64,000 nucleotides of DNA. Origin: Phallusia mammillata (Eukaryota). Where the stretch lies: positions 16,616,001-16,680,000 of the forward strand of contig OZ281494.1 of the NCBI GenBank assembly GCA_965637545.1, read 5' to 3'. The stretch's first letter is position 1. The number at the start of each line of letters is the position of its first letter. The notes beneath the pieces were generated by a model. That model was not told where the DNA came from, did not search any database, and was given only the letters and a program-made list of their open reading frames with translations. Shown piece by piece: positions 1 to 64,000 of the stretch. A program made the translations under genes and the position numbers.

Positions 1-25
1 CCTTGTCTATTTCGACCAGACTTAC

Positions 26-764
26 CTGTATAAAAGAAACAGTATCACTCCAGCTCCTGCAATCAGAAGAGCTGCTGCTACAATAAGACCAATGTGTAGA
101 TCACTAAGTGCTGGGCTTCGACCTTTTATTTCTTCGTCCTTGTTGGTTTCAGAAATTCCTATTTCAGGTCTTGTTGATGGTGAAACTTTCGTACTAGTTG
201 CGGTTTCGATTGTCCCTGTAAGAATATTTACATAGTATTGTCGTGCGTTTTCAGCGACCAAAGTATGTTTTAACTATACCATATAGAAAAGCTTGAATTG
301 TGAGTTTTGTGGATTGATTTACTTTAAATCTTATATTGTTCCAGTTTGGCTCATCAAACACCTCGCAAGCTGCTTCATTTTCTTTTTCTTCTGGGTAGAG
401 CACCACGCATCCAGCTAATGCTGGAATCTCGTTTGGGAGTGGAACTATTGTTCCACTTGTTATGGTAATTACAATCTTACTGTATTGATCGCCTTTTAAC
501 TTCACGCACTGACTTTCGGGGAAGTCGTATGAAGTGGGAACAGTTTCTAACATCAGTAGTTGGCAGTTGCGGTTCATACCAACTGCAATACAAATGTTTT
601 AATACGAGATTACCATACACATGTGGATTTTATCATGCAAACAAATGCCTATAGTTGGTTGACTTTTACGACAAAACGATACGTTTAGAGTTCTAATGCT
701 CACCAGTTGTGGAGATGCATTCCAACAAAATTCCTAAAGCTGTCAAGATGGCAATAAGCAACAT
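26..764 (-). CDS. R1: type-I receptor with divergent CUB-like ectodomain; 3' part runs off the left edge of the window
   Basis: Exons 704-764 (MLLIAILTALGILLECISTT, signal peptide), 280-582 (Cys-containing beta-rich domain) and 26-215 (S/T stalk plus TM IGLIVAAALLIAGAGVILFLLYR). GT-AG sites give compatible phases. Confidence 0.75.
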
Positions 765-1366
765 AATATTTGTCTATTGTAACTAAACTGCAATTGAACG
801 CTACATTCCAAATGTTTGCTTGTTTTATTTCCTGCTGCTAAACACATAAACCCGCACCTGCACACAAACGTCATCTTGTATCGTAGTGATTAAACAATGC
901 GTCACCATAACACTATTCACAACATGCGTTTTCATCACATATGAATAGCCATTAAAAGTGTTTCGTTTCTGTTTGTGATTATAATTATTCAACCTGTTTC
1001 TTTACGAGGTTCGTATACGAGTAGCTATCACTTGATGGCTAATTATTTCTCAAATCAATTACGCATTTCTTCACCTTGTTGGTAATGCAGTTTGATATTT
1101 GAGTCAACGCTAAACGCAGAACACCATTATAAGCATATGGGAGTTACAATCTTAACTTTTTAATGTAAAAGCATATAGAGCCAATAAATGATAAAGATTG
1201 TAACTATTACACAAAAACACATAGCAAACTTTTAGCAGTTGATTTGGTGCGTGGAAAAAGTTATATCAAACTAAATATTAGCCTGTATATTTGCATGTAG
1301 TTCAGTTTTTGCAGTGTCTATTACTCTATATACGAATCACAGTAAATTAGCAACATTTTAGCCAGT

Positions 1367-2843
1367 TTAGGAGTCTACTACTACAGTACGAATCAATGCG
1401 TTGTCATACTGGTTAAAATGGATGATTGTAGTTGAGTACCTGTCGCTATGTTTAGCACTTTGATATGAAGTTGTATAAGATGGCTTGGTTGCTAATGTCT
1501 CGCTTTTATCATCAATCCGCTCCAATGTGGTTGTCGAGCCTTGTTCGGACAGCAATAACTCGTCGCTCGTGGTTGCCAATTGTTTGCCAGATGATTTTGA
1601 TTGGTAGTTGTGTCTGACCAGACCGTTCCTAATGTTGATAGGATTACAAAGGTTTCCGGGTGTTTGCTGTTTAAAACTGTAGTGTTGGTAGTTAGATTTC
1701 GATTTCCATCTTTTGGGCTATTGTCCCTCTTGGTATCGTTTGTGGGAGTATTTTGGTAATTTGTGGCCACTACCGCTCCGTGTAAACTTGTGGTTGATAG
1801 ATTGTCGTTTGTTTTATTGTTGGTATTTGTTGCTTGGCTTACGATTGTGGTTACCGGTATTTGGTTTGGGGTAATCGCTGTTAAAGTGTTAGATGCGCCA
1901 ACTTCGGTAGCTAATATCAGGGAGACTATTGTTGTAGCCATTACAAAATATTGGTTGTGGTCGGGTTTTGGGTAAAGTGTCCTGCTTAGAGTAGTCAATA
2001 AACAATCATACTCTTGATGTTTTTTTTGCTGAAACGTGGCGCTAACACATCTTGTACCAAGGTCATAGAAGACTCATTGCTAATGGTCGTTGTGGCCAAT
2101 GTTACTGTGCCCCAATTCTGTGGAGCCAACTCTGCAGAACATCATTTGATGTGTCGACTGGAACCAATGTGAAGCAACCCATAGTAGCTTGGTTACCTGC
2201 CAAATACCTTTTTGCAATTTGAAACTAAATTACATTTTTCTCAGTAGTATATGATTTTTGGAACTGTTGTAAAACGTTCACGCTAATTTCTAACATGTAA
2301 ATCACAGTACGCCAGGACTAAAAGAAAGCCCTTATTTCTGCGAATTGAGTACCACAGATTTGGCAGTGTACCCGCCAAAAGACGACATAAAAATACACTG
2401 CCCTATGCAGCACGCGCATGCTTTTTTGCTCCTCTTGCAAACCAGTCGACCTATGATTTGAGTTACATATTTAAACACTTACCGTTAACGATTACATATC
2501 CAACTGTGTTGTTAACGCGAATTTTACAATATCCTGGTAGGTTTATTGTAACACAGTCGTTCTCGCGAGAGTGGAATGTCTGTAGTGTGTTTTTCAATTG
2601 TAAATCCCGACAAGACATTTTAACTACAATGAGTTTGTTTAGATTATTTATCAAAATTTTGCTAATGTCAAACCTACACATTTTTCCAATTGCACTGTCA
2701 CCTTTTAAAACGTTTGGTCTGCAGGCAAAACAAGAATGAGTGCAAACTGCGATGCATGCAAATGGCCTTACCTGCTGATGTGTTAATTGGGGTCAAAAGA
2801 AAGACGATCAAAATAAGTCTTGTCGATATACGTATTTAAACAT
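1367..2843 (-). pseudogene. R2: decayed mucin-like/receptor gene
   Basis: Signal-like exon near 2772-2843 has its ATG out of frame. A Cys-containing exon lies at about 2480-2720. A long Thr/Asn-rich exon at about 1367-2200 is broken by frameshifts (ORFs 1492-1998 and 1367-1579 continue each other in different frames). Confidence 0.55.
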
Positions 2844-3248: not shown

Positions 3249-4718
3249 TCATTTTCCAGTAGTTTCATACAGCACGTTTACAACTGTCTCCGGCTCACAT
3301 GGTTTTTCTGCAAATCCACTTTGGCCAGCCAGCATGTAGGGCGCTGCCTTTCCGTTTGTACGGGTGCTGTACAGCTCGTTGACGACAGTTTGCTTGTCTG
3401 GGTTAAGTTGATCGTCCGTAATCAACTCATAATTGTGATCGGTAACTGCTTTTGACTGATCATCGATGATTCCAGGATGTTCTTCCGCTTTTGATTTGTT
3501 GTTGCTGTTTGAACATAGACTTTATAAACAAAACTTACATGTATTTTTTTGTAATATGGGGTAATTTTTAATCATCTTGAGAAATAAATTTACAGGTAAA
3601 GTTTAATCAGAATTTGCAACAGGTGGTAGTGTTGGCCGTAAAGGTTACAAAGAAGCTTTATACCTTCTAATGCAAACAACAATGATGACCACACTAACTA
3701 GTAGCAAAACAACCGCTACAATAATCAATGCAAGATGGGTATTGCTCAGGAGACCTGAAAAAAAAACAGTAGTGGTGATTAGTTTTACTCTTGATGGTAT
3801 TTGTGCTTAAACTGCATATTGGCAAAACCTGCGTCTGCGTCCCTCTCAATAATGTGTTGTTGGGTTGTATGTTCTATACTTTCGGCCGTTGTTGGCATAT
3901 ACGTTGTAGAATTTAACCCTTTGGTCGATATGTTTCTATTTGCGTCTGCTGTGGTAAATGCGGTCACAGGTGAAGTTGAATTTGTTGTTGTTGTTGTTGT
4001 TGTTGCTAATGATGATAATGTTGGGGGTGCTCGAGTTTGCGAATCTGAATTTAAAAAAATGCTGTAAATTGCATTAAAACTTTTTCACGCATAATGGCTT
4101 ACCTTCCGAACAAGCAAAATATTCAATCTCAAAAATCTTGATTTCACCACCCGTCAAATGGGCAAAACCGCTGGAGACTTGCGAACGGTCAGATACCATG
4201 CACCTCGTATCACAAGTATTCATTGCTGACGTCGTACCAAAAACTAGACAATCACCTTCACGAAAATCAATACATTTTGACAACAATACTCAGCACGAAG
4301 AGGCTGAATAGGGAAAACACGCTTTTTATCGAACATTTTGACACATGCCAAAAGTATTACAAAATGTTTTTTCTTGAAACAGATAAAACGTTTCGAGCCT
4401 TTGTTTTACCTGCCATGAAAATAGGGTTTACTCGCGTACCAATTCCGCCTTGTATTATGTTGATTTGTATGGCATTGTATTGTGCTGGTATGTCGAGTTG
4501 TAGTTTGCAGGTAGTATCTTTAACTGCATACAATGTATAACTTTGGTTTTCCGTCGAAACCGTCAGAGGGTTATTTGCGCAAAGACCAGTAACATCTAGG
4601 ACAAAAAAAAATTGAGTTTATAATTACCGCGTTTGGCCTTGTAACCTATAATCAATTTTGTTACCGTACCTTCAAAACTGCAAGCAATCACAAATAATAG
4701 TACAGCTGTCAACTTCAT
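3249..4718 (-). CDS. R3: CUB-like receptor, class A tail
   Basis: Exons 4670-4718 (MKLTAVLLFVIACSFE), 4410-4595 and 4103-4255, a poly-Thr stalk at about 3830-4050, TM LALIIVAVVLLLVSVVIIVVCI, and tail 3249-3504 with HNYELI, VVNELY, VVNVLY. All exons join in frame. Confidence 0.75.
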
Positions 4719-5994: not shown

Positions 5995-8245
5995 TTAATA
6001 ACCGTTTTGTTTTGTTTCTGTATTTGACTCTCTTTTTCGTATCAGGGAAGCTGGCATTGGATCGTACAGAACGTTTTTCACCATTCCTGGATTGGACCCA
6101 GTAGTTTGGAGCTTTTCTAGCGACTTGTGCTCGTAAAGTCGATTGTCCACCATTCCATATTCATGTGGTGGTCCGCACTCAGCATATGTTTCGTCTGTCG
6201 GTGTAACATCGTTTTGTTGGGCCCGAAACGTTACATCATCTGCCACGGCGTATACACCTTCCTGTTGTCGCCTATTCAGCTGCTGTTTGTCGGGCTTTGG
6301 CGTGGCTGCAGACTTTCGCCTGTAATGCACAGCACACTCTTTATAAGCTTAAAGTTTCTACTCTACTCATATATTCGGCACATTATAGACACACCCATTC
6401 TTATCGGCACATAATTAAAACCTAGTTTAACTAGTTAAGATGAACATAAATTCATAACTGGGATCAGCCCTGAAGCGTACAGTGATTGACTAGTTTAACT
6501 AGTGACAGTATGGAAATTACATTTACCTTCGCTTCAATAAACATACAACAGCAACTGCTAAGATGATTACAAGGACAAGAACAATCACTAGTGGAATGAT
6601 CAGATCAATATTGGTTGATGACTGAGGATTACCAGTGCTTTGGTTTGTTGAATTTGTAACAGCTACGTTGGTGGTACCTTTAAACGGAAAACTATTAACT
6701 TTAACAATGCATTGTGTTTTTCAACCTTTCTGCGAAAACATGCTATGCTGCAATTCGCTGCTAAGTTACAAAGCAATAGGTGAGCATCTTGAAATGGCAA
6801 GCGGGGGGCGGAACTGGTTGCTAACGGGTAAAAATTTATTCATGCATGTGGTTGCAGAAGCCAGCAGCCAATGTTCAAAACTCACTGAAGGTTGGTCGTT
6901 TTATCAGATAAGATTTTGTGGACTGTACTGAGATAGAACTGGCTGTCGTAGAGCCGTTTGGTGGCGCCACTGTTGTGGGAGCTGTGAGATAGAAGAATAT
7001 CTAAAAATCTGTTTTTCTCCGGATGTTCGAATAGCAACAAACGGCACTTAACCAAATGAGGTGTACAAAGTTTTGACGCTCGTTTTTTTAACTGTGGCAG
7101 TAACTAAACGATTTTCATTTTATACCGTACCTACGAACGTGCAGTTGACCACGTGATAATAAAAGGCAAAACCTTTGTTTTCTTTTGCGTTGTTGGATAC
7201 AAAAGTTACATTGGGGTGCATCCACTTGTCAACAGTGGTAACGTTGGCGGCAATTCGGTGACAAAACATCTCAAGTTTCATGCAGGTCGTGGTATTTGGA
7301 CCATGATATCCGAAACACTGAAAGGGGAGATTAGAACCGCAGAGTGGTGTGCCTGTAGTATGTTAAAATTATAGCATATCAGAATTTTTAAGTTTATTAG
7401 TTTTATCTAAAAACCAAATGACCCAAATTCCGAGCCATAAAGAACAGCGTGTTCCAACGAACAAAAATTACTTGCAATAGTTTTAGTCTGGCCCTACATG
7501 GACATGTCAGTCAATTACTATTAAAAACGTTAGTAATGCTATTTGCTATTATGTACGCCTTTACTTTGGCTATCCGTTAATTTTTTTTAAAAAGCACGAA
7601 CAACTTGTACCTACTGCATGGGGCCTTAGTTTTATGTGCTGCTCGATTGCACCATTGTGCGGAACAGAAAACATTGTGTAACTTACCGTCTGGCAGAAGC
7701 AGGTAATCGTCGCATCCATTCTTACCCTGAGCGATGTTAAGTTTGTAAAACTCGATCAAAATTCCTTGGTCAATGGCTACCGGAAACTCCCACACGCAAT
7801 GCTCATTCCTTCCGTAATTTTTCTTGCCAACAGGGTGTGAAATATTTCCGTGCGGTTTGTTTAGGTATTGGGAACATGTTTGTCTGGGCTGCTTATTTGG
7901 TCCCGCCTGTGTTGGCTGCGTCGGCTGTGTTGGCTGTGTCGGCTGCGTCGGTTGCGTCGGTTGTGTTGGTTGGGTAGGCTGTATTTGTGGCGGCTGTTTG
8001 CGCTTGCGTTTCTTTGCCGATGCCAGGATAAATACTGAAAGATTTGTAAACATTTTTTTAAATCTGTTTTATTTTTCAAAAGTAAACTTAAAACAATTTT
8101 ACCTGCATTTTATTAAACATAGTAATCCTAGATATAATCAGCAGTTTTTACGTAAAATACAATCAGTTTTACTTACAATGTGATTATAATTACAAGCATC
8201 ATTACCTGCCATGAGTAAAATCCACGACAGCTTCGTTATTCTCAT
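5995..8245 (-). CDS. R4: CUB receptor with N-terminal (PTQ)8 extension, class A tail
   Basis: Signal exon MRITKLSWILLMA. Exon 7687-8034 encodes KKRKRK, (PTQ)8 and the CUB N-half TCS..HGNISHP..YGRNEHCVW..GCDDYL. The next exon gives PLCG..FVSNNAKENKGFAFYY. Stalk and TM IIPLVIVLVLVIILAVAVVCLL follow; the tail has GVYAVA, VDNRLY, VKNVLY. Confidence 0.85.
7908..7979 (-). repeat. 9-bp coding tandem repeat encoding (PTQ)8
   Basis: Eight degenerate ccN-acN-caR units read directly in the R4 CUB exon. Confidence 0.9.
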
Positions 8246-8775: not shown

Positions 8776-9884
8776 TCAAGTTTCGCTTAACTTCATATCT
8801 TCCATCCCGACTTCTTGACTGTGGTAAATCATGTTTTCTTTGACTTCGGCATATTCGCTTGGTCCACATACCTCATACGGATTTTCTAGTAAATTGTTGC
8901 CGTGCCTGGTTATGTCAATAGCGGTTACGTAAGTTTGTGAGTTGTTGTCATTGCCAGCATCAATCGGTCGTTTTGAAGCTTTTTCTTTTGAATATCTACA
9001 ACAATAAGTATTTTTTGTAGCCCTGTATAATCTTCCAACAGTTTCTACTAGTGTTATTGTAGTTTACCCACCTTCTGTAAAGGAGCCCAACAGCTACTAC
9101 AAACAAAACAACAGCTAAAAGACCCATGGAAACTTCGAGTGGTTTCTTTCTCTGTAAATCTAAATAACATTTGGTGTTAGCGTGTTTGTTGCCAATCTTG
9201 TTACGACATTAAGTAATGTTCATGTAGTGTTATGTTTTGCCTTTATCTTGGTTACTTCACTTACCGACTTAAAAAGATAGAGGGACAGACAAAATGCTAT
9301 GTTTCTGTCTTTGGATACGATGAAAGCAAAGTACGACGATTACTGACCTGTTTTTAAGCAAGGTATCCATGTATAGTGGAACTGTATTGGATTGTTCGAA
9401 GTATAGACAATTGTGACGTGTGACAAGACTGGCACAGGAACATTAAAGAAATTGCAGCTGTGTGATTTTTTAAATATATTTTTTCCGTTCTTCGCTTGAA
9501 ATTTCCTATCTATTGTACATAATGGATAAAGTGTGTCTTATTTTAAGGCTTATGTAGTTGTTTTCACTCACCTTGCGTTTTAAACCAAATTCCTTCTGGT
9601 ACCGATGAAAACGAAACAACAAACGCTGCCTGTCTTTTTAATCTTACAAACCAGGTGCATTGACGTGGAGCGCATTTATTTTTTTCGACCGTTACGACTC
9701 CGGAAGGTTCATCCAACATACGTGCTGTCGCGTATTGTCGTGTATTTCTCACTGCTTGTACGATATCTAATACATAGTAGAAATGATTTTTCACCAATGA
9801 AATTTCCCCTTTTTAAAAATTCATACCTGTCACGTAGAATGTCATAAGTAATATTATTGCTTTTACTATTGTCCAAAATTTCAT
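8776..9884 (-). CDS. R5: divergent CUB receptor, class A tail with canonical ITIM
   Basis: Signal MKFWTIVKAIILLMTFYVT; CUB halves ..EPSGVVTVEKNKCAPRQCTW.. and ..FHYTWIPC; short TM MGLLAVVLFVVAVGLLY; tail with ENPYEV, SEYAEV, KENMIY. The stalk-to-TM junction is unresolved, so the gene may be damaged. Confidence 0.6.
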
Positions 9885-10396: not shown

Positions 10397-12092
10397 CTAT
10401 TTTTCATGTAATACATTATATTTCTCTTCCGCCTCTGAAATAACCGCCATACTTCTTAACCAACCACATTTTTCGGCTCACCGGCGCTTTGTATTCGGTA
10501 AATTTCATTTTCTACCACTTCTGCGAACTCACTAGGTCCACATTCGTCGTAAGAGTTTTCGAAGTCAGTAACATCTGTCATGACGTTTTCGGCGGCGGTG
10601 TAAACCACTTTGCTAAATAAACTGAATAGAACAAGAAGATGATACGAGATTAAGTACTGTTTGTTTTGCTGTAATTAAAAATGTATGTTTATAAAACGAC
10701 CTCTTTGCCAATTTAAATGAACCAACCTTCTGCATAGCAAGCCGATAGCCAATGCTAACAAGGCGATAATTAGAACTGCGCCACCTGCTGTAAGTGCAAT
10801 GAATAAAATGTTGTCGGTGAAGAGAAATTCCATGTTTTCCGTCGCTCCTGCAACACATTATTCAACATGCATAAATCGCAAACGAACAAAAGCATCAGTT
10901 AATTTTTGATGTACAAATCTACGGTTTTCCAAATATACCAACAAGATCTACCTGTCGATGTCGATCTGTTTCGGGTTGTTGATGATATTGCCATTGCTTT
11001 TTTCAGTTGTTGGCATTTTAGTTGTAACAATGGGAAAAATATTTGTACATCGTTTGGTAGGTTCGACAAGAATATGGTAATTACCGAAGTTTGAACAGGC
11101 CGTGATTTCATAATTGAAAGAGAAATCAAGGCTCGATTTGTAAACAATGTCTAGAGTTGGTGTTGAAATAGTGTCTCCATCGTTGTGAAAACAATGTTGG
11201 GATCCTCCGAAAATATTACGGCCTTGTGATGGCAATGTCTAGAGCAGGGGTCCGCAAATAGTGGGTCGCGACCCAAATTTGGGTCGCGAGACCTTCCAGT
11301 CTGGGTCGCGAAATATTTTAAATTTCCCAGGAATATAAGCATCGCATCTACAGTATTAATGAATTTCGGCTTTTTTCAACCTTTTAATTATTATTGCATT
11401 GTTACGTATGACTACGTAACTGTGACATACAGTCTATGTAACAATGCAAAAAGTTAAGCGCACCTATGCAAGCATGCGTTTTCTGATTAGCTGTGTTCTC
11501 AACACAGAGCCCACAGTTCTCATTTGTTAGTATAAATACGTTCGTTTCCCTACTGTTTTATGTGAAAATAGCAACTGACAATAGCATAATAGCAGTCTTA
11601 ATATTGATATTTAGTTGATTAGTATTTTCCACAGACTTAATGCTTGGGTCGCGAGAATTTAGAGCAATTTTTTTAGGGTCGCGCCAAAAAGTATTTGCGG
11701 ACCCCTGGTCTAGAGTACACACATAAACACGTTATAGTGGCAACCTGAAATTAAACCTTGTACAGTACAAACTTCCACCTGAAGCTTTCGGACTTAAACC
11801 CATTGGGACTGTACGAAAAGTGACAACCACAACTTGGCGGGGTTGGAGTATAAACTTCCATTTGCACGTGTCTTTGCACTCATTGGCGTCAACTGATACG
11901 GCACCCGTTGGTTTTGCTAACTTAAAAGTAATTGGCGTATCGGTCCCCCAATACGCACCACCTTTAAAATCAATACAATTTTGTTACTACTGAAATGGGG
12001 AGCATGTTAGAAAAACGACTTCTGTAAACCCAATTAATTATACCTGCAACTCCTATAATCACCACCAGAAACAGTGTACTTCGGTGATCCAT
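10397..12092 (-). pseudogene. R6: paralog of R5, disabled
   Basis: Signal MDHRSTLFLVVIIGVA. The first CUB exon has two in-frame stops (..KLY*F*RWC..). A hAT MITE sits at the 5' edge of the second CUB exon. TM IALTAGGAVLIIALLALAIGLLC and tail ENSYDECGPSEFAEVVENEIY..EKYNVL remain open. Confidence 0.65.
11245..11707. mobile_element. Non-autonomous hAT (Charlie-like) MITE, 463 bp
   Basis: 16-bp TIR caggggtccgcaaata / tatttgcggacccctg, perfect 8-bp TSD gtctagag (11237-11244 and 11708-11715), and subterminal gggtcgcg repeats. Confidence 0.95.
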
Positions 12093-12268: not shown

Positions 12269-12740
12269 TCATCGATTTAATTTGTCTACGGTTATTTCCT
12301 TTAATGCCATACATTCGATGTGACTAGACTCAGAGGCTGTGGCGGCAATAACATAGTGGTTTTTAATATAACTTTGTGGTACAAATGTATTGTCTTTCAT
12401 TTTGCGTTGGACCTCACACATTGATATGTCAGTTTCGTTGTCGACAATCCTATACACTTCATTATCACGTGATACAGACTCGGAGCTGACGTAAGAATTG
12501 GCGTCATAAGTTTGGGTGTCTTTTGTGTAAATTGCGTCAATAATTTTTGTGGAATAAAACCGAATCACATGCCAATTTTCTGTTAATCTTTTACCTTGGG
12601 TAAATTTAAAGACCGGGTAAACATAGCATGCACAAGACTTTGCAACGAAATGTATTCCAAAGAATGTACCTACGGTATTGGACAAAAACAAGCCAATGAC
12701 AAATGTAAAGAAATCCTTTTCACTAACGATAGAAAAGGCT
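12269..12740 (-). other. R7: possible TM-plus-tail remnant or short-ectodomain gene
   Basis: Open frame with hydrophobic FFTFVIGLFLSNTVGTFFGIHFV followed by a tail-like segment (DAIYTK, NEVYRIV). No convincing signal or ectodomain exon was found. Confidence 0.3.
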
Positions 12741-13119
12741 GATGAAATATAAAAGTTTAAGACTTCGATGAAACGTACATGAATAAACTGAAATTTACAT
12801 AAAACATGGGCCCATTCCATCGCAGAACAATGGTGACGGATCTCATGCTTTGCTATTCATCTTTGCGCAAGCTACCACCACTTAAAGTTCCGGTAAGGGC
12901 CATTTTACTATTGACTTACATAGACATTCTTTACATGCATCTCAATCGAAAGCGTTTTACTGGTCAGGGTTTACGATGCAAAATCACGTTCACTTATATT
13001 AAAAATTACAACGAAAACACTAATAGGTTTCACAGTTTTTACGCATGACTTTTGCACATCAAATAAAAAGTAACATCAACAAGCTAAACCAGGCAAAATG
13101 GAAAAGAGATGTTTATTGG

Positions 13120-49932: not shown

Positions 49933-51716
49933 TCACATGTTCATGTACGTAGCATCATAGGAAACTCGGCGAGCAGGTATCGGCGCCTCATAGAAGTCCT
50001 CGGTGGTTGTTTCGTTCACATATATGCTGTTATGATCGGCCTTTTGCTGCTTAGAACCCTCTCCTTGCGTGCCAACATTGATGTACATTGGTTGCTCACC
50101 AGTAGGTTGTGATTTTTCGGTCGCTGTTTCTTGCGTATCAGCTTCAGGTACTTGCTCCTGAACTGAAAGTGGATGTTCGCTACCTATAAAATCATGCAAA
50201 AACACAGAAAATTAAGAATAAAAAATGCGTGTTAAACAAGTCATATTGAAGTGAACAAAGTTATATTTAAACTAAAATGGTTTAGTGTTGTTAGTTGCGT
50301 TGTCAATTAAAACTTCGTTGTTTTTTAGCCAAACACAGTGATTTTTGGATGCACAATTTATTGCCAACATAGTTTGATCATAGGACGAAATTAATTTGCT
50401 TTTTTGTACCTACGTCGTTTTGTTCGTGCTGGCTTGTCGTTGCCCCTAAAACAGAATAACATGAACAAAAGTTGTACTAGATAAAATATTATTAGCTCCG
50501 ACTTCCAAAAGTATATTTATTACATATTAGCAATCAATGCTGCAGCCTCGAAATTACGTTTTAAAATTAGGTGACTTACCTTATCATGCAACACACTAAT
50601 ATTACGATGGCTGCAATCGCCACTAATCCTCCCGCAACGATTCCAATTATTGCTTCCGTTCGTAATGAAGTTGCTTCTGGATTGGGAGCCAGCACTGAAA
50701 CACACAAACATCACTTTGTTCTCATGACCGTTGTGTGCGTATTGAGTAATGTGGTTAGTGCAATATGAACTATTTTGTTGAATAAGGAGGAAGTAAAGAA
50801 GCGCTTTTTAAGAAGTTGGGGGTTCGATTGCTGTTTGCGAGCAAGTTTTGTCATGATAAACTTTCGACTTAGTGACTATAATATAAATCTGTCACAATGG
50901 AAACTCGTGCATTATGTGAAAAAAAAAAAACAAATAAAAAAACGCTTACCAGGACAGTCGGTCAAAGTGTAGTTCATTTTTAACACGACACCAGCCGGAG
51001 CGCTGGAGTTAATTGCTAGTGTGAACCAAGGGTAATTTCCACTAAAGTTTTTCACGTTCATCCCCGGCAAGTGGCAAGTACTGTCTGTGGATTGAAGGAC
51101 AAAGCACTCGGTGTTGTTTATGCTCATAGGCCCCATGTAGGTCATTCCTTCAAACAAATGTATATTCTTTATACTGTAGTTTTTAAATTTAAAATTCAAC
51201 ATTATTATGTTTAACGTAAAAACATTCTTTGTTTATATTGTTACTACGTAACTTCGATTTGAAAATAATAATCCTTAATCAATGACTCAACTACCAGCAC
51301 CTTTTAAAGTAATATTACAAAAATACAACTGTTACGGATAAGTTGTATACTCAAATATAATAATCAAACTTCAGGAAACTGACAAAATAAAGCCAGAAAA
51401 CCAACCTGATGGGAACTGAATTTTTGTGTTCTCATTTAGCAGTTCAATTTTGCCGATGAACACTAACTTAACGGACGGAAATGGGATATCTTGTGTTCTA
51501 GTTAAGTTATATTGAGCATTGGTGTAGCTATACTCTTGGTCAAGGTTAAAGTCGCCGCATTGAAGTTGGGCTTGAGTTGTTCTTTGAAATAGAACCACTA
51601 CACATAGAAATAGTTAGTATGTTAATTACACTGCAGAATTTATCTCATTTGTTTGATTACTTACCTTCTACGATAAGAAGATAAAACTTGAATGATTTAA
51701 TGTAGCAGAAATTCAT
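49933..51716 (-). CDS. R21: divergent CUB-like receptor, class B tail ending YMNM
   Basis: Exons 51665-51716, 51406-51597, 50950-51147, 50580-50694 (TM AIIGIVAGGLVAIAAIVILVCCMI), 50414-50445 and 49933-50183 (MYINV, IYVNE, FYEAP, TYMNM*). Phases are 1-1-1-2-1. Confidence 0.8.
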
Positions 51717-53756
51717 GATTGTAACAAATGCTGTAGCAAAAACCTGTCAAAAATTTTATGATATTGTATTATGTTCACCTGCACCTTGACACAACATACG
51801 TAGTAACACATTATAGTCATATTATATATTTTCAAAACAATTTAGGGTAATACAAGTATAAACTTAAATTGGTGACTAAATTATTAACGTAACTGATAAA
51901 CTTGAAAAGCAAGGTTCAAGTAAAACAAATATACGTAAAAATTAAACATTCGTAAAAGTGCGAAGTACTTATCCTCCCTTTCCTCCCATGTCTGCTAATA
52001 TAGATTGGCCACCAGAACGTGACCCTGGGTTCTTAAGTTGTTTCTTTGTGACGTAGGGCATGCGTACGCTATTCTGTTGCGGGTCTCTCAGGAAGTCGGG
52101 ATATGACATAATGTATTGTAGAATTACCCAAGTCTGGCCCGGTCACCTCAACTATGTCGAATATACTGTAATGCTCTGCAGTCCTCAAAATAATGCTAAA
52201 ACAATATTTAAGTGGCTGGTTACACATTTTCACAATTCTGTAAAAATGAACCATTATCATTGGTTTTTAATGCATCATAAGCGCTGCTTGTTGACTGCTT
52301 AACTCTCTTTGTTTTAAAGTCCTATTCGCTCTGTGATCTGGGTTGTTCATACATTTATATGTAAACAAATTCGCGTTGTGTTTTTTTTATCAACTGCACT
52401 TGCTGCTTTTATAAACTTCAAAAGTAATCGACTTTCTAAAGGCGTGCTTATGAGATAAACAAATTTCGTGCAACAACAGCTGAAGACGCAATCCCGGAAA
52501 AGCTTCGCAACTTTTTTATTGTTGGTCACAACATGCGTAATGAGGTCACACACGGGGTCAATAGATAATGATACAGTGTGGTTGCCGTAGTTTGATCGCG
52601 CCAACAAACATGCAGTCACTGCGGTTTCGGCCTCAATCCGGGTGTTTCTTTTTTGTTTCTTGTTACAGTCAGAGAAACTACTTTGACTTAAATTTATTAA
52701 AGCACTGTAACGACGTATTGCTCGGATTTTTCAAACTCATAAGGAATAGGAAGATTTTGTGAAATTGTTTTTGTCGGTTGTAATTGGGCGACTACAATTC
52801 ATCCTTTAAAAATAATGAACGAGAAAGAAACGTTTGTAATATTACTGTTGATCGCTTTGGTTTTGGATATTTTATGACATGCTTAAAAACTGTACCTTAT
52901 GTTTGACCATCTATTTGCATTTGCTTTTGGATGTAAAATTAAACTGCACTTTTATGGCGTTTGTAGGGGTAACGAAACTTACGGCACAATTTTTGACCTA
53001 TTAGGTCTCATGTACTTTAGTATCAGTTGTTAAAAACCCTCAATCGACCGTTGTGCGAAATAAAAAAAAACACTGCAACTTTTGAATCTGAAAACTCTGT
53101 TTCAACCTCTATGTTTTTCAGCATGCCTTGATCAGTGAAAGCGAAAACCACTTTGAAGTCGGGCTTCGGTTAGGCATTGTTTGCGCAAAATGACACATAC
53201 AGTATTATCACTGCAGCTCTACGTACACAGGTTTATGACAAATCGGTTTTTCGTACTGGTTCTTTTCGCTTGACACTGGGTCAATGTAGTCGTAATGAGT
53301 AGATCCTGTTTCGGTTGTTGTCGGGGAATTTACGTACGATGTGTTGTTTGTGCCTGAAGTGCCCAATGGCGCTGCTGGCGGATTTTCTTTGGGCGCTTGT
53401 CTGACTTTAGGTGTCGCTGATGATTTTGTTGTTGGTAGTCTTTTACGCATTGCACGATTCCGACTGTTAATAAAGTTTTATGCACATTGACATTAGGATT
53501 AAGTTGCCACACCAAATGTATGCAGACACACATATGGTATTTAAGTAAAGTGGTTGTTTGGGAAGTGTTAAGGTGCTACAAAACTGGAACTGTTTACAAA
53601 ACTGTGCAAAAGCCCCTTTAAACCATTTTTTGTTGTGTTGAATGTTGACGTTTGTATTACATGTACCTTATTACGTACCTTTTCAATTGGATAATGATGA
53701 TGATCAAGATAAATACTAACACCAGGAGAATTCCAGATAATATTGATGTTGCCGTG
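50259..53756 (+). repeat. Segmental duplication block 2, copy A (copy B at 60762-64000)
   Basis: Colinear near-identity from agttatatttaaactaaaatgg to gatgttgccgtg, with small indels. Confidence 0.9.
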
Positions 53757-55412
53757 AATGCAGTCAATTCAACGCGATCTAATCATATAATAACAGTTAT
53801 TTTTTTTGTGTACCCTGACATATATAGTTAAATTTTACCCAGATATCGAGAAACAAAAATACCTGTTTCTGTGACTTCCTGTTCTATCGTGCTGCTTGGA
53901 ATCATCTCTGTATCTATGTGTAAAGCAGAAGTATTACTTTACTTTGGGTTAAAATCGTGTGGAAAAAACAAACAAATATTTTTTACTGCTTGTATATTTA
54001 TTAATCGTGTTATGCGTATCAGTTATATCAGTGGTTCCCAACCTATGGGTCGCGACCCAAAGTTGGGTCGCCTGAAGATTCTGTTTGGTCGCCTGTTTTT
54101 GTGACAATAAGAGATTTACTCTTTGACTTCGTTTCGTGGCGTTTTTCCCCAAGGCTTTAAATCAGGATTCTTCAACTGGGGCGAGTTCAACATTACTGAT
54201 TGTATGAATATGTAAGCTTACAAGAACTGTGAAACTCAGCTAACTTTATCTTACAAGCAGATGAAGTGTTTGAATTTATTGTGTTGACTGGCGATTGTTT
54301 GTGCTTTTTGTGATCTCGAGAGCAAGGTTGGGCATCTAATTAGCCACAGGAACTTGTTTCGGTTTCACATTTCCTATACAGGCTTAATAGTGCTTCCCAA
54401 ACTGCGTATTTGTATCATTCAATTTGGTAAATGTAGTGTAATTTGATGTTGAATGTATGATTCTCCTCTACCGAGTAATGCCCTATTGTTTCAACAAAAA
54501 AGGGCATTGTTTGCGCATAATTGTAATATTATTTTTTCTATGATGTAACAAACTGTTTTAAATTGTTGCTCCAAAATAATGTCAAGACAACTTGGCGTAA
54601 TAATGGTTAATTCTGTTTGTGACGTCATATTGGCTGATGATGCTTTGAGCCGACTCAAAGGTTCGCGCTTAATGGAAATGTTTTGTCGAAAAAACGAATA
54701 GTGTTTGTTTGATTTTTAAATTTTCCAAACTGGCGTAATAATTTTCGAAAAGCATACCTGATATATAGGCAAAATTTCAACCGAAATAATAAGAATGCGT
54801 ATCCATGGGTCGCGAGAATCCACAAAACAAAATTTTGGGAAGGATTTGGGTCGCATCAAAAAAAGGTTGGGAACCACTGAGTTATATAATATGGAACTGT
54901 GCCCAATTTTGACAACAAGACTATGACAGACGTCACGAAATTGGCATGATATATGTGTTTTGTACTAAACGCAGGGAACACCATCGCTAAACATGGGCGC
55001 AGCCTGTCACACCCACAATAGGCTAATTTTTTTCAAATTTAATCAAGGGTTGGAGTTGGAAACCTAAAACGAGAGACATACTCGATGCAGACAAACCTAT
55101 TTATATATTACAGTTTAACTTGCATTAAACGCAGATTCATACATGACACTTTTTACTACTTATAAAACAATAATGACGTCATTGTTTTTTGGTTCATTAC
55201 GTATATGGGTACCAATAAATAGTAAATTCATATTTACCTTTCGGACATTTAATAAAGGTATAATTAATTGCAGCGCCTCTGTAGTTTTGCCTCCTGTCAG
55301 ACCGGAAAAGCGCAATTCGGCATGCGCTGCGAAACACACCCGCTAAGCATCATGTTTTCCGAGGCAAAGGCGTAGCAGTTTTTTGGTTTGCTGTTTCCAC
55401 AGATACGCAAAC
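53208..55412 (-). pseudogene. R22: 3' half of a CUB receptor with class B tail; frameshifted CUB exon 2; native 5' exons absent
   Basis: CUB exon 55238-55412 is 175 nt, not a multiple of 3 (LRICGNSKPKNCYAF.. then ..FRSDRRQNYRGAAINY in another frame). Stalk at about 53870-53930; TM SILSGILLVLVFILIIIII; tail SYVNS, HYDYID, QYEKPICHKPVYVELQ*. Confidence 0.65.
54029..54879. mobile_element. Non-autonomous hAT element, 851 bp, in an R22 intron
   Basis: TIR cagtggttcccaacc / ggttgggaaccactg, perfect 8-bp TSD agttatat (54021-54028 and 54880-54887), and gggtcgc subterminal motifs shared with the 11245 element. Confidence 0.95.
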
Positions 55413-55571
55413 CTGTAAGTAAGTCAGTGTAAACAAAAAATAACAAACGTTTTTCATCATAAAATATGATTTGTTTCTGAATTTATTATTTCTATTATTG
55501 TATCAAAATGTTTGACCTTTAAGGTCTCTTTGGTGCAGATAGTTACATTGACCGTTTTGATTAGTGTATAT

Positions 55572-55881
55572 CAGAGTTGTAAACGGGCCGAAAAGTGGAG
55601 CCCGAACCCGAAAGTACAAGCCCGAAACCGGCCCTAACCCGAATCGTTTTATAAAGCCTGTTTAAGCCCAAAAGTTTATTTGACAAGCCTATAAATTGAA
55701 ACCTCAGGAAAGACTAAGACAACAAACACCACAGACATTTGGTCCTGTATGAACAAGGCAGGTTCAGCAACTTGCTACTTAGCTAGATAAATTTATATGA
55801 AAAAAAATACTGACACAGAGTGTAAAGTCAGGCCCGCTTTTTTGAAGAAACCTAAGCCCGAACCCGGCCCAAACCCGGCCC
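55572..55881. mobile_element. Truncated DNA-transposon end (hAT-like) with gcccgaacccg subterminal repeats
   Basis: Starts cagagttgtaaacgggccg and carries clustered cccgaacccg/ccggccc repeats at both ends. The matching right TIR is absent; the sequence abuts the first 5 nt of an R15-type exon. Confidence 0.6.
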
Positions 55882-56340
55882 GTCATCTTCTTATCAAAAA
55901 TGATTTTTAGTGTATGTGTATAGGTTTATAGCAATCACTTATTACCTACCGCTAAGTAGGGTGAGATGGTCAACGCATTGGCAAGTTGCCAACGTTCCAT
56001 TACAAAAACTTGGTCCATTCATTCTGGCTAGTTTTATGCAGTTGACAGTAATAAACAGAACGTCATGGTTGATAACTGGAAACTGCCAGTAACATGATTG
56101 TGCCTGGGATATAGTTACGGGTGAAGAGATCTTTCCTGACATGTTAGAAATCAAACCTGAACTCACATCACAAGGTAGAGTTGAACCTAAACCATAAAAT
56201 TGGACAATGTGTGCCGTCTTAAATATTCTGGGAACTGGTAAATGACAAAGTGTTTACTGCTTCTACATGAAGTAATTTTATGACTTACCTTGACTAAGTC
56301 CAATGCAACCAGCACAGCATAATACGAGAACTATATAAAC
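55882..56340 (-). pseudogene. R15b: 5' fragment of an R15 duplicate (partial signal exon, CUB exon 1, 5 nt of CUB exon 2)
   Basis: Aligns with 35277-35758. The start codon is replaced by the hAT element at 56341, and everything 3' of aag|atgac is missing. Confidence 0.8.
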
Positions 56341-58012: not shown

Positions 58013-59669
58013 TTACTTCTTTTCCATGTATAGAATGTTGTCAACTTGTATTCTTTCGCTTGCAGATGGGGGCGAATTTTCTTCAGTCTCACCGATTTCG
58101 GAATACACAAGCGTTTCATCTCTTTTCGGTTTATGTATTTCAGCGTATTCCGAACTGTCACCTTGCTCAGTATCAGTTGACACAGTGACGGGCCTAGAAA
58201 ACGTCGAGGTTTCTTGTTGTGTTTCTACTTTCTTGTTGCTTGGAATTTGACCTGTTTGTCTCTTTTTTCTTGTGTGCTTACATCTGCACAAATTTGAAAA
58301 CGTGTAACATAGTGTACGACATAGTGGCAAGAAGTAAAAGACAACAAATGATTAAAGTACCTTAATAACATGATAATTATCACGACAAGCGCAGTTATTC
58401 CTACTGCAGCTGTGATGATTACGGTGATTTTTCTCGCATGTTTGCTAGAAGTTGCGGACATAGGTGTCGTTTCAGTCTGGCTGTCACTTTTGGTCGAATT
58501 ATAGGTGTACTTTGATGCTGCATTAGCGAAAGGATGTGTTACTGGTCGTATCATCTTAGTCCCGTATTTACGGCAACAAATAGGCCTGCGTTATAAATTA
58601 AACCAACGCCAAAGCGGTTGTTTAATGCTATTAAACAAAAAACCTTTTGGGTAACCTGGGTGTGAGTATTAAAAAATAGGTATGCAAAATGTATGACTTT
58701 ACAGAAATGATCAACCGACTGTAAACTTGATTTAAACTTTTGACAATTGAATTTTAAATATCGCCTGTACTTTTGAGAGTAGGATGGAAAGGCAACTGTC
58801 AAAAGATTAGGGTAAATATTTACAACCCTTTCCTAAATAATAAATACACTAATACTAAAATTTGTGCCAGTATTTAATTGATTTAATAGGCTTGGCCACC
58901 TAAAAAAACACGAGAATAAAAAAATAAAAAAAAGCATATAAGAATTACACTGCGGAATGCTTACCTGACTTTAATTTGAAATAATTCAGTTCAAATCCTG
59001 GTTGGTTGTTTGTAGCACTCGACAAAAACTTGATGTCATATGTAGATAAATTGGTTTTTAACAGCGATACCGTACTGCACTTATATTTATTTTTTCGTTT
59101 GGTTTGATTATGTGGGGTGTTTGGTGATCCCAATACAAAGCATATTTTGTTTTTTGTTTTCCCACACATGTACAGTCGGTTTTCTTTGTCGTCTAGAAAC
59201 ATAGCGTCTCACAAAAGGTGCACAAGTATCTTTTAATAATGTGGGAAACGTACCTCCTAGTATAGTAAAGTAATCTTCGCATTTACAAAAATTCAAACTT
59301 CCATTGCAAAACTGATTTTTCTCATCTTTTACAACTTCGAAATGGGTTATTACAATCATCAAAACTTCCTTATCAGGGTTCATCGGAAATTTCCATGTAC
59401 ACGATTGATTGGCAGGGTATGTCTTGTTTTCAAGTGCGTTAAAACCAGGTGAAGTAATTCGTCCATGTATGTTGTTTTCTACCTTCGCACTCACATTGCA
59501 ATTCTGACTGTTTGTTACACCTGAACAAACAAAACAAATTTGCGTGAAAACATCCCGATTTTCAGTCATAGAAACGCTTACTTGTAAGAACTACCATAAT
59601 CACTAATACTTTCAGGTGAGCTTTGTTTTCTCGAACGAAAAGTTTCCACGTTTTGTCAACAACCGTCAT
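58013..59669 (-). CDS. R23: duplicate of R16 with intact CUB exons and tandem-ITIM tail
   Basis: CUB exons are open (..MNPDKEVLMIVITHFEVV..). The TM is 5 aa shorter than in R16; tail SEYAEI, LVYSEI, VDNILY. The first stalk exon is partly deleted, so the reading frame across the stalk is uncertain. Confidence 0.65.
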
Positions 59670-60562: not shown

Positions 60563-62217
60563 TCACTCCAAGTCCATGTATCCATAGTTTTTTAGGGGTA
60601 TTGGAATTTCGTAATCGCCGACTTTAGGCAATGTTTGCTGCGTAACATTGTTCTTTTGCGTGGCGGGTTGTTCGGTTCCTGACAATGTAACAACGTTTTT
60701 GAACTTGTTATTGTTAGCCACAAAATAATTTACCTGGGTTGGATATTACTTTTATAGTTATAGTTATATTTAAACTAAAATGGTTTAGTGTTGTTAGTTG
60801 CGTTGTCAGTTAAAACTTCGTTGTTTTTTAGCCAAACACAGTGATTTTTGGATGCACAATTTATTGCCAACATAGTTTGATCATAGGACGAAATTAATTT
60901 GCTTTTTTGTACCTACGTCGTTTTGTTCGTGCTGGCTTGTCGTTGCCCCTAAAACAGAATAACATGAACAAAAGTTGTACTAGATAAAATATTATTAGCT
61001 CCGACTTCCAAAAGTATATTTATTACATATTAGCAATCAATGCTGCAGCCTCGAAATTACGTTTTAAAATTAGGTGACTTACCTTATCATGCAACACACT
61101 AATATTACGATGGCTGCAATCGCCACTAATCCTCCCGCAACGATTCCAATTATTGCTTCCGTTCGTAATGAAGTTGCTTCTGGATTGGGAGCCAGCACTG
61201 AAACACACAAACATCACTTTGTTCTCATGACCGTTGTGTGCGTATTGAGTAATGTGGTTAGTGCAATATGAACTATTTTGTTGAATAAGGAGGAAGTAAA
61301 GAAGCGCTTTTTAAGAAGTTGGGGGTTTGATTGCTGTTTGCGAGCAAGTTTTGGCATGATAAACTTTCGACTTAGTGACTATAATATAAATCTGTCACAA
61401 TGGAAACTCGTGCATTTTGTGAAAAAAAAAACAAATAAAAAAACGCTTACCAGGACAGTCGGTCAAAGTGTAGTTCATTTTTAACACGACACCAGCCGGA
61501 GCGTTGGAGTAAATTGCTAGTGTGAACCAAGGATAATTTCCACTAAAGTTTTTCACGTTCATCCCCGGCAAGTGGCAAATACTGTTTGTGGATTGAAGGA
61601 CAAAGCACTCGGTGTTGTTTATGCTCATAGGCCCCATGTATGTCATTCTTTCAAACAAATGTATATTCTTTATACTGTAGTTTTTAAATTTAAAATTCAA
61701 CATTATTATGTTTAACGTAAAAACATTCTTTGTTTATATTGTTACTACGTAACTTCGATTTGAAAATAATAATCCTTAATCAATGACTCAACTACCAGCA
61801 CCTTTTAAAGTAATATTACAAAAATACAACTGTTACGGATAAGTTGTATACTCAAATATAATAATCAAACTTCAGGAAACTGACAAAATAAAGCCAGAAA
61901 ACCAACCTGATGGGAACTGAATTTTTGTGTTCTCATTTAGCAGTTCAATTTTGCCGATGAACACTAACTTAACGGACGGAAATGGGATATCTTGTATTCT
62001 AGTTAAGTTATATTGAGCATTGGTGTAGCTATACTCTTGGTCAAGGTTAAAGTCGCCGCATTGAAGTTGGGCTTGAGTTGTTCTTTGAAATAGAACCACT
62101 ACACATAGAAATAGTTAGTATGTTAATTACACTGCAGAGTTTACCTCATTTGCTTGATTACTTACCTTCTGCGATAAGAAGATAAAACTTGAGTGATTTA
62201 ATGTAACAGAAATTCAT
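60563..62217 (-). CDS. R24: chimera of R21-type ectodomain/TM with the R17-type terminal tail exon
   Basis: Exons 62166-62217, 61907-62098, about 61451-61648, 61081-61195 and 60917-60948 copy R21. The next downstream exon, 60563-60678, copies R17 and is in phase 1. The acceptor of the third exon has changed from aag to aaa, so function is uncertain. Confidence 0.6.
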
Positions 62218-63455
62218 GATTGTAACAAATTCTGTAGCATAACCTGTCAAAAATTGTATGATATTGTATTATGTTCACCTGCACCATGACACAACAAACG
62301 TAGTAACACATTATAGTAAAATTATACATTTTCAAAACAATTTAGGGTAAGATAAGTATAAACTTAAATTGGTGACTAAATTATTAACGTATAACCGATA
62401 AACTTGAAAAGCAAGATTCAAGTAAAACAAATATACGTAAAAATTAAACATTCGTAAAAGTGCGAAGTACTTATCCTCCCTTTTCACCCGTGTCTACTAA
62501 TATAGATTGGCCACCAGAACGTGACCATGGGTTCTTAAGTTGTTTCTTTGTGACGTAGGGCATGCGTACGCTATTCTGTTGCGGGTCGCTCAGGAAGTCG
62601 GGATATGACACAATGTATTAGAATTACCCAAGTCTGACCTGATCACCTCAACTATGCATTCCTCAAAATAATGCTAAAACAATATTTAAGTGGCTGGTTA
62701 CACATTTTCACAATTCTGTAAAAATGAACCATCATCATTGGTTATTAATGCATCATAAGCGCTGCTCTTTGACTGCTTAACTCTCTTTGTTTTAAAGTCC
62801 TATTCGCTCTGTGATCTGGGTTGTTCATACGTTTATATGTAAACAAATTCGCGTTATGTTTTTTTTTATCAACTGCACTTGCTGCTGTTATAAACTTCAA
62901 AAGTAATGGACTTTCTAAAGGCGTGCTTATGAGATAAACAAATTTCGTGCAACAACAGCTGAAGACGCAATCCCGGAAAAGCTTCGCGATTTTTTTTTAC
63001 AAAAAAGGAAGGATTTGTAAAATTGTTTTTGTCAGCTATAACTGAGTGACTTACAATTCATCCTTTAAAAATAATGAACGAGAAAAAAAGTTTGTAATAT
63101 TACTGTCAATCGCTTTGCTTTGGGATATTTTATGGCACGCTTAAACACTGTACCTTATGTTTTACCATTTATTTGCATTTGTTTTTGAATGTAAAATTAA
63201 ACTACACTTTTATTGTGTTTGTAGGGGTAACAAAACTTATGGCACAATTTTTGACCTATTAGGTCTCATGTACTTTAGTACCAGTTGTAAAAAAACCTCA
63301 ATCGACCGTCGTACGAAATACAAAAACTTTTGAATCTGAAAACTCAGTTTCAACTTCTGAGTTTTTCGGCATGCCTCATTCAGTGAAAGCAAAAACCACT
63401 TTGAATTCGGGCTATGGCTGAGCGTTGTTTGTGTAACATGACACATACAGTATTA

Positions 63456-64000
63456 TCACTGCAGCTCTACGTACACAGGTTTATGACAAATCGGTTTTTC
63501 GTATTGGTTCTTTTCGCTTGACACTGGGTCAATGTAGTCGTAATGGATGGATCCTGTTTCGGTGTTTGTCGGGGAATTTACGTACGATGTGTTGTTTGTT
63601 CCTGAAGTGCCCAAGGGCGTTGCTGGCGGATGTTCTTTGGGCGCTTGTCTGACGTTAGGTGTCGCTGATGATTTTGTAGTTGGCAATCTTCGACGCATTG
63701 CACGATTCCGACTGTTAATAAAGTTTTATGCAAAACAAAATTTAAGTTAATTGTCACGTAAAGATATTCAGACACACAAGTAGTATCGAAGTAAAGTGAT
63801 TGTTTGGGAGTGTTAAGGTGATACAAACCTGGAACTGTTTACAAAACTTTGCTAAACTCCTTTAAGCCATTTTTTGTTGTGTTGGATGTTGACGTTTGTA
63901 TTACGTGTAACTTATTACGTACCTTTTTAGTTGTATAATGATGATCATCAAAATAAATACCAACACCAGTAAAATTCCAGATAATATTGATGTTGCCGTG
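63456..64000 (-). CDS. R25: duplicate of R22 (tail and TM; remainder beyond the right edge)
   Basis: Tail ..SYVNSPTNTETGSIHYDYIDPVSSEKNQYEKPICHKPVYVELQ*; TM exon from about 63920 to the window end. Confidence 0.75.

Follow-up and report, generated by a model that had tools for sequence, protein, structure and literature searches.

The 64-kb window analysed here (the whole 64,000-nucleotide stretch of the solitary ascidian Phallusia mammillata, contig OZ281494.1) is occupied by a single array: about 24 genes for small type I membrane proteins, all co-oriented on the minus strand. To judge from their sequences, these genes probably form a lineage-specific, fast-turning-over modular family of small receptors, in which each member carries one of two cytoplasmic docking modules. 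We call the two kinds of tail class 1, with a common N-x-(L/I/M)-Y motif, and class 2, with motifs such as YxN and Y-E-x-P. Many of the ectodomains are CUB domains, and related ectodomains occur on different tails.

The array emerges from the listing of open reading frames (ORFs), nearly all of whose long frames lie on the minus strand of this AT-rich DNA (GC 0.34-0.42), and from a splice-aware model search; the roughly 25 co-oriented genes reported in the first-pass annotation stand as about 24 units. A typical unit consists of a signal-peptide exon, an exon for the N-terminal half (N-half) of the ectodomain, an exon for its C-terminal half (C-half), an exon for a Ser/Thr stalk and the transmembrane (TM) helix, and a Tyr-rich last exon, and this is the layout that had been described. 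The shortest introns are about 60 nt long. Unit C, spliced by hand, is intact with five exons (introns of 61, 61, 423 and 77 nt, in phases 1, 1, 1 and 2), and our gene finder, a small custom dynamic-programming program run segment-guided over all units and complemented by a separate scan for signal exons, gives exactly the same model. The finder and the scan together gave C, E, F, G, H, I, K, M, N, O, R, T, U and V a complete model, and P and Q one that lacks an identified signal exon; at this level some ten to fourteen units look intact, and the confirmed models have 5 or 6 exons. A Pfam search of the ORFs in the window that were otherwise unexplained gave no match.

Two of the genes are transcribed and spliced as modelled. 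We compared positions 42270-48269 with contigs from four RNA runs of the same organism, whose tissues are given as codes, and found that the contigs skip five minus-strand intervals bounded by GT..AG, so they come from spliced RNA. Unit H was seen in 4 of the 4 runs, with introns at 42663-42802 and 42995-43164, both of which the gene finder had placed exactly. Unit F was seen in 1 of the 4, with introns at 46518-46913, 47001-47154 and 47380-47451; the last two were predicted exactly, and at the first the last-exon acceptor in the model is displaced by 24 nt, in frame, relative to the RNA. The loose end of the F contig fits an upstream signal exon near 48469-48523. H is a relative with no ectodomain, and its presence in all four runs raises the possibility that it could act as an adaptor or decoy.

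The units are listed below, lettered A to X from high to low coordinate; the R numbers of the first-pass annotation count up from the low end (R1 = X, R18 = H, R25 = A).

63456..64000, minus strand: unit A (R25), partial; TM helix and class-2 tail with YVN, YEKP and C-terminal YVEL; ectodomain outside the window.
60563..62243, minus strand: unit B (R24); two-exon ectodomain and TM helix 96% identical to E, with an I-type class-2 tail (YEIP, YGYMDLE); no in-frame path was found across the homologous small exon, and its intactness is uncertain.
58013..59669, minus strand: unit C (R23), intact five-exon CUB receptor; tail with SEYAEI, LVYSEI and VDNILY. Its exons are 59669-59582 (signal peptide), 59520-59254 (CUB N-half), 59192-58965 (CUB C-half), 58541-58361 (stalk and TM helix) and 58283-58013 (tail).
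53208..56330, minus strand: unit D (R22); probably a pseudogene, with a CUB N-half that shares 83% identity with K and a class-2 tail of the A type.
49933..51730, minus strand: unit E (R21); ectodomain that does not match CUB, TM helix, class-2 tail with YINV, YVNE, YEAP and C-terminal YMNM; apparently intact.
46058..48523, minus strand: unit F (R20); expressed, 6 exons, CUB; class-1 tail with DVYCCV and VNNILY.
43706..45569, minus strand: unit G (R19); CUB receptor with a full model; YxxM-type tail with YATM, YEVM, YVNV and YEEI.
42274..43358, minus strand: unit H (R18); expressed; signal peptide, about 30 extracellular residues, TM helix and a 136-residue acidic tail with ILDNVMY.
39600..40922, minus strand: unit I (R17); Cys-containing ectodomain of the V/I/X type, TM helix, class-2 tail with YETP and YGYMDLE; apparently intact.
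37019..38788, minus strand: unit J (R16); paralogue of C, 87% nucleotide identity over 3.5 kb; a pseudogene in the assembly.
34121..35800, minus strand: unit K (R15); CUB receptor with a class-1 tail expanded by a repeat.
29814..33294, minus strand: unit L (R14); CUB of the C/J type; stalk, TM helix and class-2 tail 81% identical to M; pseudogene.
26391..28438, minus strand: unit M (R13); N-like ectodomain, L-like class-2 tail with YVNS, YEIP and YVEIE; apparently intact. Its CUB exons, 28262-27993 and 27929-27681, are separated by an in-frame intron of 63 nt.
22478..24068, minus strand: unit N (R12); CUB receptor, the partner of M; class-1 tail with DVYTEV and MVDNILY; apparently intact.
19879..21680, minus strand: unit O (R11); divergent member of the CUB group; tail with DVYAQV.
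17086..18919, minus strand: unit P (R10); probable divergent CUB, Thr-rich stalk, TM helix, class-1 tail with MVDNQLY and KDNILY.
15263..16619, minus strand: unit Q (R9); probable divergent CUB in one exon (15951-16437); class-1 tail with three NxLY.
13120..14522, minus strand: unit R (R8); probable divergent CUB; class-1 tail with YNELY and KDNVLY.
12272..12856, minus strand: remnant R7; a single ORF that contains a hydrophobic stretch and finishes Tyr-rich, no ectodomain exon.
10456..12092, minus strand: unit S (R6); probable divergent CUB; tail with SEFAEV and VENEIY; probably broken.
8776..9884, minus strand: unit T (R5); probable divergent CUB; tail with SEYAEV and KENMIY.
5995..8053, minus strand: unit U (R4); best CUB match of the window, N-terminal (PTQ)n; class-1 tail with MVDNRLY and VKNVLY.
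3249..4718, minus strand: unit V (R3); V/I/X-type ectodomain, good signal peptide, Thr-rich stalk, TM helix, class-1 tail with VVNELY and VVNVLY; apparently intact.
1370..2792, minus strand: unit W (R2); Cys-rich ORF and Thr/Asn-rich stalk-like ORF, neither TM helix nor tail being found in the ORF listing or by Pfam; remnant or uncertain.
1..598, minus strand: unit X (R1), partial; single-exon ectodomain at 254-598, TM exon at 25-273; tail outside the window.

Class-1 tails occur in C, F, H, J, K, N, P, Q, R, S, T, U and V, and class-2 tails in A, B, D, E, G, I, L and M. A table of tail motifs reproduces the two gene lists drawn up in the first-pass annotation, except that O, which had been placed in the first class, has neither NxLY nor the motifs of class 2. 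The core of the class-1 motif is hydrophobic-V-D-N-x-L-Y, of which there are 23 copies, compared with 0.56 expected from shuffled tails (maximum 4 in 2000 shuffles); in ORFs it is found 20 times on the minus strand and 2 times on the plus strand. Relative to the tyrosine, the copies have M or I at -6, V at -5 (18/23, or 19/23 counting V or L), D at -4 (13/23), N at -3 (23/23), V or I at -2 and L at -1 (19/23), and the motif is retained in 13 tails that have otherwise diverged beyond alignment. Most class-1 tails also have an acidic Y-x-x-V/I site upstream of it. In K, a 39-bp in-frame repeat (34124-34321, 5.1 copies, 94%) gives the tail four VDNVLY and one VDNILH.

There is no conservation at positions +1 to +4 of the class-1 motif. 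The +3 residue is S, R, Q, K or A, or the protein stops earlier–some class-1 proteins end 2-4 residues past the tyrosine, and P, Q and R 2-3 residues past it. An ITIM (immunoreceptor tyrosine-based inhibitory motif) needs a hydrophobic residue at +3, so the motif that defines this class is not an ITIM, and we rejected the label "ITIM class" under which these genes had been described. Just three genes have canonical ITIMs: C and J (SEYAEI/V, LVYSEI) and T (SEYAEV). Every class-1 copy lacks the Pro at -2 of NPxY, which makes the motif an NxxY variant; on its residues it would fit the hydrophobic-x-N-x-x-Y pattern that is read by phosphotyrosine-binding (PTB) domains. The tail of S (10459-10674) has SEFAEV in place of SEYAEV, and the loss of this tyrosine fits the view of S as a decaying gene. 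The sequence DVYxxV occurs as a single copy in each of the tails of N (22478-22885), O (19879-20109) and F (46115-46517).

The class-2 tails are 66-98 residues long. Besides YxN they have Y-E-x-P-hydrophobic-P, which is conserved, in G and E also YxxM, and at the C-terminus Y-(V/M)-(E/D)-(I/L); we take these to be SH2 sites of the Grb2, Crk/Nck, p85 and Src-family types. The tail of E (49933-50211) ends in YMNM and also contains YINV and YVNE; YMNM is the motif of CD28 and YINM that of DAP10 (binding of p85 and Grb2). None of the class-2 TM helices has an internal charged residue, and since no TM helix carries one, we rejected the idea that activating members pair with adaptors bearing an immunoreceptor tyrosine-based activation motif (ITAM).

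For the ectodomains, the Pfam CUB model (PF00431) scored above its gathering threshold on three single exons, of U (32.7 bits), F (24.7 bits) and M (24 bits); the matches of single exons were otherwise weak. Because the CUB domain is interrupted by a phase-1 intron, we tested spliced models rather than single exons, using a CUB hidden Markov model (HMM) built from 104 bona fide CUB domains that were excised from seven proteins returned by an exhaustive search. This HMM was significant on the spliced models of U, F, G, M, C, N, L, K and D. G aligned to positions 5-111 of its 114 (E = 1.8e-11), and in F, U, K, L and N both CUB halves match it in the correct order. When seven group-1 ectodomains were compared with a generic CUB alignment by hhalign, the match had a probability of 98.5% (E = 2.5e-15) over 110 columns (2-114 of 116). 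On the strength of these profiles we regard the CUB domain as proven in group 1, which comprises 11 units (C, D, F, G, J, K, L, M, N, O and U).

The remaining units are sorted by pairwise BLAST into small groups (Q-S-T, P-R, V-I-X and B-E), and ectodomain identity between groups is below 30%, which bears out the very divergent ectodomains noted earlier. Those of Q, S, T, P and R are probably very divergent CUB domains: a joint profile of the five matched CUB with a probability of 89.7% (E = 1.8e-6) over 98 columns, and a profile of Q, S and T by itself with 83.6%, in the N-half only. As a lead only, 37 of 60 matches of Q in the feature space of a protein language model are to CUB clusters (best 0.90). 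V, I, X, B and E match no CUB profile, so we rejected the reading that all 25 units are CUB receptors; the single-CUB claim of the first-pass annotation stands for 11 units and probably for 5 more, the ectodomains of V, I, X, B and E are unassigned, and H has no ectodomain. Besides H there is one remnant with no ectodomain, and two units (A and W) are unjudgeable. Like U, P, R, S and T, the V/I/X and B/E ectodomains follow a two-exon plan and have an aromatic-x-aromatic...Cys strand at their end.

An AlphaFold model of the M ectodomain has a mean predicted local distance difference test score (pLDDT) of 80.1; its alignment was seeded with generic CUB domains, and for this reason it is not an independent test of the CUB assignment. 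The best 50 matches of this model in the PDB are all CUB domains, with template-modelling scores (TM-scores, by target) of up to 0.75, and include PCPE-1, neuropilin, C1s, C1r, MASP, TSG-6, cubilin (3kq4), Kremen and Neto2. The in-frame intron of M (27930-27992) codes for 21 residues that lie within the only segment of the model with a pLDDT below 50. CUB domains have conserved cysteines in a C-x-W strand and at C-x-D-Y and C-G positions; in the alignment, C42, W44 and C82 of M are nearly invariant, and the family has additional cysteines and two insertions. The three acidic positions of the canonical Ca2+ site are all kept in F only. In U, an 18-bp repeat (7907-7982) codes for the (PTQ)n stretch directly after the signal peptide.

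A blastn comparison of the window with itself reveals how ectodomains and tails are combined. The similarity blocks, which stop in introns or at duplication junctions, are as follows.

36350-39788 and 57345-60751, 86.8%: tail of I and unit J, matching tail of B and unit C.
50259-52517 and 60762-62996, 96.4%: E matching B.
52745-53756 and 63003-64000, 88%: TM helix and tail of D, matching A.
23291-23883 and 27666-28274, 86%: CUB of N matching CUB of M.
26266-27193 and 29684-30626, 81%: stalk, TM helix and tail of M, matching L.
35277-35760 and 55882-56342, 83%: N-halves of K and D.

In four cases, closely related ectodomains are joined to different tails. The CUB exons of N (class 1) and M (class 2) have 86% nucleotide identity, K (class 1) and D (class 2) are 83% identical, C and J (class 1) are 76% identical to L (class 2), and E and B are 96% identical with two different class-2 tails. 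M thus combines an N-type ectodomain with an L-type class-2 tail, D a K-type N-half with an A-type class-2 tail, and L a C/J-type ectodomain with a class-2 tail. As judged from these alignments, tandem duplication and recombination in introns have been shown to shift ectodomain and tail blocks independently, so the same ectodomain type is coupled to different outputs. These four cases support the paired layout put forward in the first-pass annotation. B is a chimera of an E-type receptor and an I-type tail, formed at the junction (60751/60762) of the 86.8% and 96.4% duplications.

The array also contains many broken copies, as had been proposed. The CUB N-half exon of J carries an 8-bp deletion when compared with C and L. 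In L, the C-half exon is split by an insert of about 1.1-1.6 kb that holds a tandem array. The repeats (31217-32269) look like a repeat-bearing insertion: 7.3 copies of a 129-bp unit in tandem (31217-32151, 93% matches) are accompanied by a related unit of 117 bp. The C-half of D is spread over two frames, some 1.4 kb of additional DNA precedes its TM exon, and in S the model search could not join the TM frame. Two fragments of a CUB C-half between M and N (25358-25468 and 25928-26005), with 46-50% identity to M, are by their similarity remnants of a lost copy. J and L are thus broken and D and S probably so; at least 4 to 6 units are broken in all, and the remnants include R7 and W, yet ten to fourteen units look intact. 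Values of dN/dS, which come from about 80 codons per pair and partly from pseudogenes, are 0.88 (M-N) and 0.84 (D-K) for CUB N-halves, 0.35-0.66 for C-halves and 0.23-0.41 for tails, and are suggestive of a stronger constraint on the tails than on the CUB N-halves.

Searches for relatives returned only generic CUB proteins. An exhaustive phmmer search of 1.84 billion representative proteins with the M ORF gave 7 weak matches, all of them generic multi-CUB proteins, and word-indexed protein searches with the ectodomain ORF of M, with the ORF for the TM helix and tail of J and with the tail of H gave no match. A literature search found no description of a family of single-CUB receptors with Tyr tails in tunicates, and the family looks undescribed.

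In the modular receptor family that we favour, each gene would encode a signal peptide, one ligand-binding ectodomain, a glycosylated stalk, an uncharged TM helix and one docking module. The first module consists of an acidic Y-x-x-V/I followed by one to four copies of hydrophobic-V-D-N-x-L-Y, and the second of YxN, YExP-hydrophobic-P, sometimes YxxM, and a C-terminal Y-hydrophobic-acidic-hydrophobic. Ligand binding would cluster the receptor and a Src-type kinase would phosphorylate its tail. Module 2 may then recruit the SH2 adaptors Grb2, Crk/Nck and PI3K-p85 and give a positive signal, while module 1 may be read on the N-terminal side of its tyrosine by a PTB adaptor, with either a Dok-type, CD200R-like damping or an LDL-receptor-like internalisation as its output; in C, J and T only, a true ITIM would be added. 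Our guess is that recognition of self versus non-self, or of microbes, is the most natural role for such receptors.

Several observations weigh against this picture. V/I/X and B/E have no link to CUB, nor to each other, by profile comparison, Pfam or language-model features. The AlphaFold model of Q, made from a 5-row alignment, has a pLDDT of 42.7 and is unusable, and the seeding of the M model and the short, partly pseudogenic dN/dS samples lessen what those two results can carry. The signal-exon scan came up empty for P and Q. There was zero coverage in the four RNA runs compared for G, which lies between F and H and is alone in being YxxM-rich. Finally, D, L and J are broken, and the M/N pair is the only one in which both genes look intact.

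A more specific proposal is that the array is a true inhibitory/activating paired immune or allorecognition complex, in which class 1 damps haemocyte activation, class 2 triggers it, and the CUB domains read polymorphic self or microbial ligands. We hold this only tentatively and think it somewhat unlikely. The four ectodomain pairs on different tails speak for it, as do the birth-and-death turnover with pseudogenes, the near-neutral CUB N-half set against constrained tails, and the likeness of the class-2 motifs to co-stimulatory and adaptor docking sites. It would also agree with the ITIMs of C, J and T, and with NxxY being the inhibitory motif of CD200R (PMC8007030). Against it, 11 of 14 genes have a class-1 motif that is no ITIM, and class 2 has neither the charged TM residue nor the short tail of classical activating partners. 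Moreover, P. mammillata is a solitary ascidian and has no colony fusion to police. The corresponding broad claim, of a CUB-scaffold paired-receptor system outside vertebrates whose exchangeable inhibitory and activating tails are convergent with those of KIR, LILR and CD200R and serve haemocyte discrimination of self from non-self or of microbes, seems to us unlikely.

Less probable again is that these are endocytic, scavenger or engulfment receptors like the LDL receptor, LRP1 or CED-1/Draper/MEGF10, with class-1 motifs acting as clathrin-adaptor sorting signals (for PTB proteins of the ARH/Dab2/GULP type, or AP-2) and CUB domains capturing cargo as in cubilin. The internalisation signal of the LDL receptor is F-D-N-P-V-Y, and V-D-N-(V/I)-L-Y is one substitution pattern away from it; the array's motif is often near the C-terminus and needs no residues past the tyrosine. 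The CUB domains of cubilin bind cargo, and cubilin (3kq4) is among the fold matches of the M model. But the Pro of NPxY is always absent, and this explanation leaves unaccounted for both the second kind of tail, in which typical docking sites for SH2 domains occur, and the shuffling of ectodomains between tails.

It is highly improbable that the array is mostly dead, consisting of decaying copies of one or two working genes whose motifs are inherited rather than selected. Such decay would account for the broken units, the silence of G in four RNA runs and the lack of signal exons in P and Q, but not for a class-1 motif that persists in 13 tails diverged beyond alignment elsewhere, tail dN/dS values of 0.23-0.41, at least 10 complete models, and two genes that are transcribed and correctly spliced. 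Least probable of all is a role on eggs or sperm, in gamete recognition or self-sterility, for which one can cite the fast-diverging tandem ectodomains, the CUB domains of spermadhesins and ascidian sperm proteases, and the many public ascidian RNA runs from eggs and embryos (our two genes being present in tissue-coded runs), whereas long tails with SH2 and PTB docking sites are no feature of known gamete-recognition proteins and neither the ORF listing nor Pfam revealed a ZP, PKD or fibrinogen partner gene in the window.

Paired arrays with exchangeable tails are a hallmark of vertebrate innate immunity and those seen so far use immunoglobulin (Ig) or C-type lectin folds. If a tunicate has one built on CUB, this would show that coupling a variable sensor to alternative outputs is a logic that arises repeatedly on unrelated scaffolds, and hydrophobic-V-D-N-x-L-Y may link receptors of invertebrate chordates to Dok-type PTB adaptors, the route taken by CD200R. 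Given the block structure, M versus N and E versus B can be regarded as natural tail swaps.

The modular family can be set beside several known systems. With the LDL receptor and CED-1/Draper/MEGF10 it has in common hydrophobic-x-N-x-x-Y near the C-terminus and YxxV/I/L sites, but it lacks the NPxY Pro, the ectodomains are unrelated, and those genes are not in paired arrays. DCBLD1, DCBLD2 (ESDN) and CDCP1 are likewise type I proteins with a CUB-type ectodomain, and their tails serve as phosphotyrosine scaffolds. In DCBLD1/2, YxxP motifs are bound by the SH2 domain of CRKL (PMC6029619), and class 2 of the array has a conserved YExP. The DCBLD proteins add LCCL and discoidin domains, for which there are no Pfam matches in the window, and CDCP1 has three CUB-like domains, whereas the array proteins have one ectodomain. 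DCBLD and CDCP1 are also single conserved genes, in contrast to the variable tandem genes of the array, for which the exhaustive search matched generic CUB proteins only.

The fester and FcoR genes of Botryllus, which is also a tunicate, form multigene clusters with variable ectodomains and tails that have ITIM, hemITAM and "core" Tyr motifs, among them the FcoR "core-2" motif [A/D]VYxxV (PMC12582321). In the array, N, O and F carry this core-2 motif, singly rather than in pairs. They differ in belonging to the Ig superfamily, with many exons and two-gene pairs, compared with one CUB domain and 4 to 7 exons in the array; Pfam found no Ig-superfamily match in the window, and the units are all of one type and co-oriented, with no adjacent partner gene. 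KIR, LILR, CD300, Siglec and Ly49 resemble the array in their tandem arrangement, birth-and-death turnover, pseudogenes and recombined tails. The array differs from receptors of the KIR/LILR type in having ITIMs in only 3 of its 14 class-1 genes, no short-tail forms that depend on an ITAM adaptor, and a fold that is neither Ig nor C-type lectin.

CD200R inhibits through an NPxY tyrosine via Dok2 and RasGAP; outside mammals the Pro is replaced by Val, Ser or Thr, which leaves an NxxY PTB motif, and the NPxY motif class also drives internalisation of the LDL receptor (PMC8007030). Like the array, CD200R belongs to a tandem single-pass family with related ectodomains on different signalling ends, and class 1 here has NxxY with a hydrophobic residue at -5. 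The ectodomain is Ig in CD200R and CUB in the array, with no homology detected between them. The alternative members of the CD200R family use a charged TM residue to pair with DAP12, whereas those of the array have long tails with SH2 docking sites of their own.

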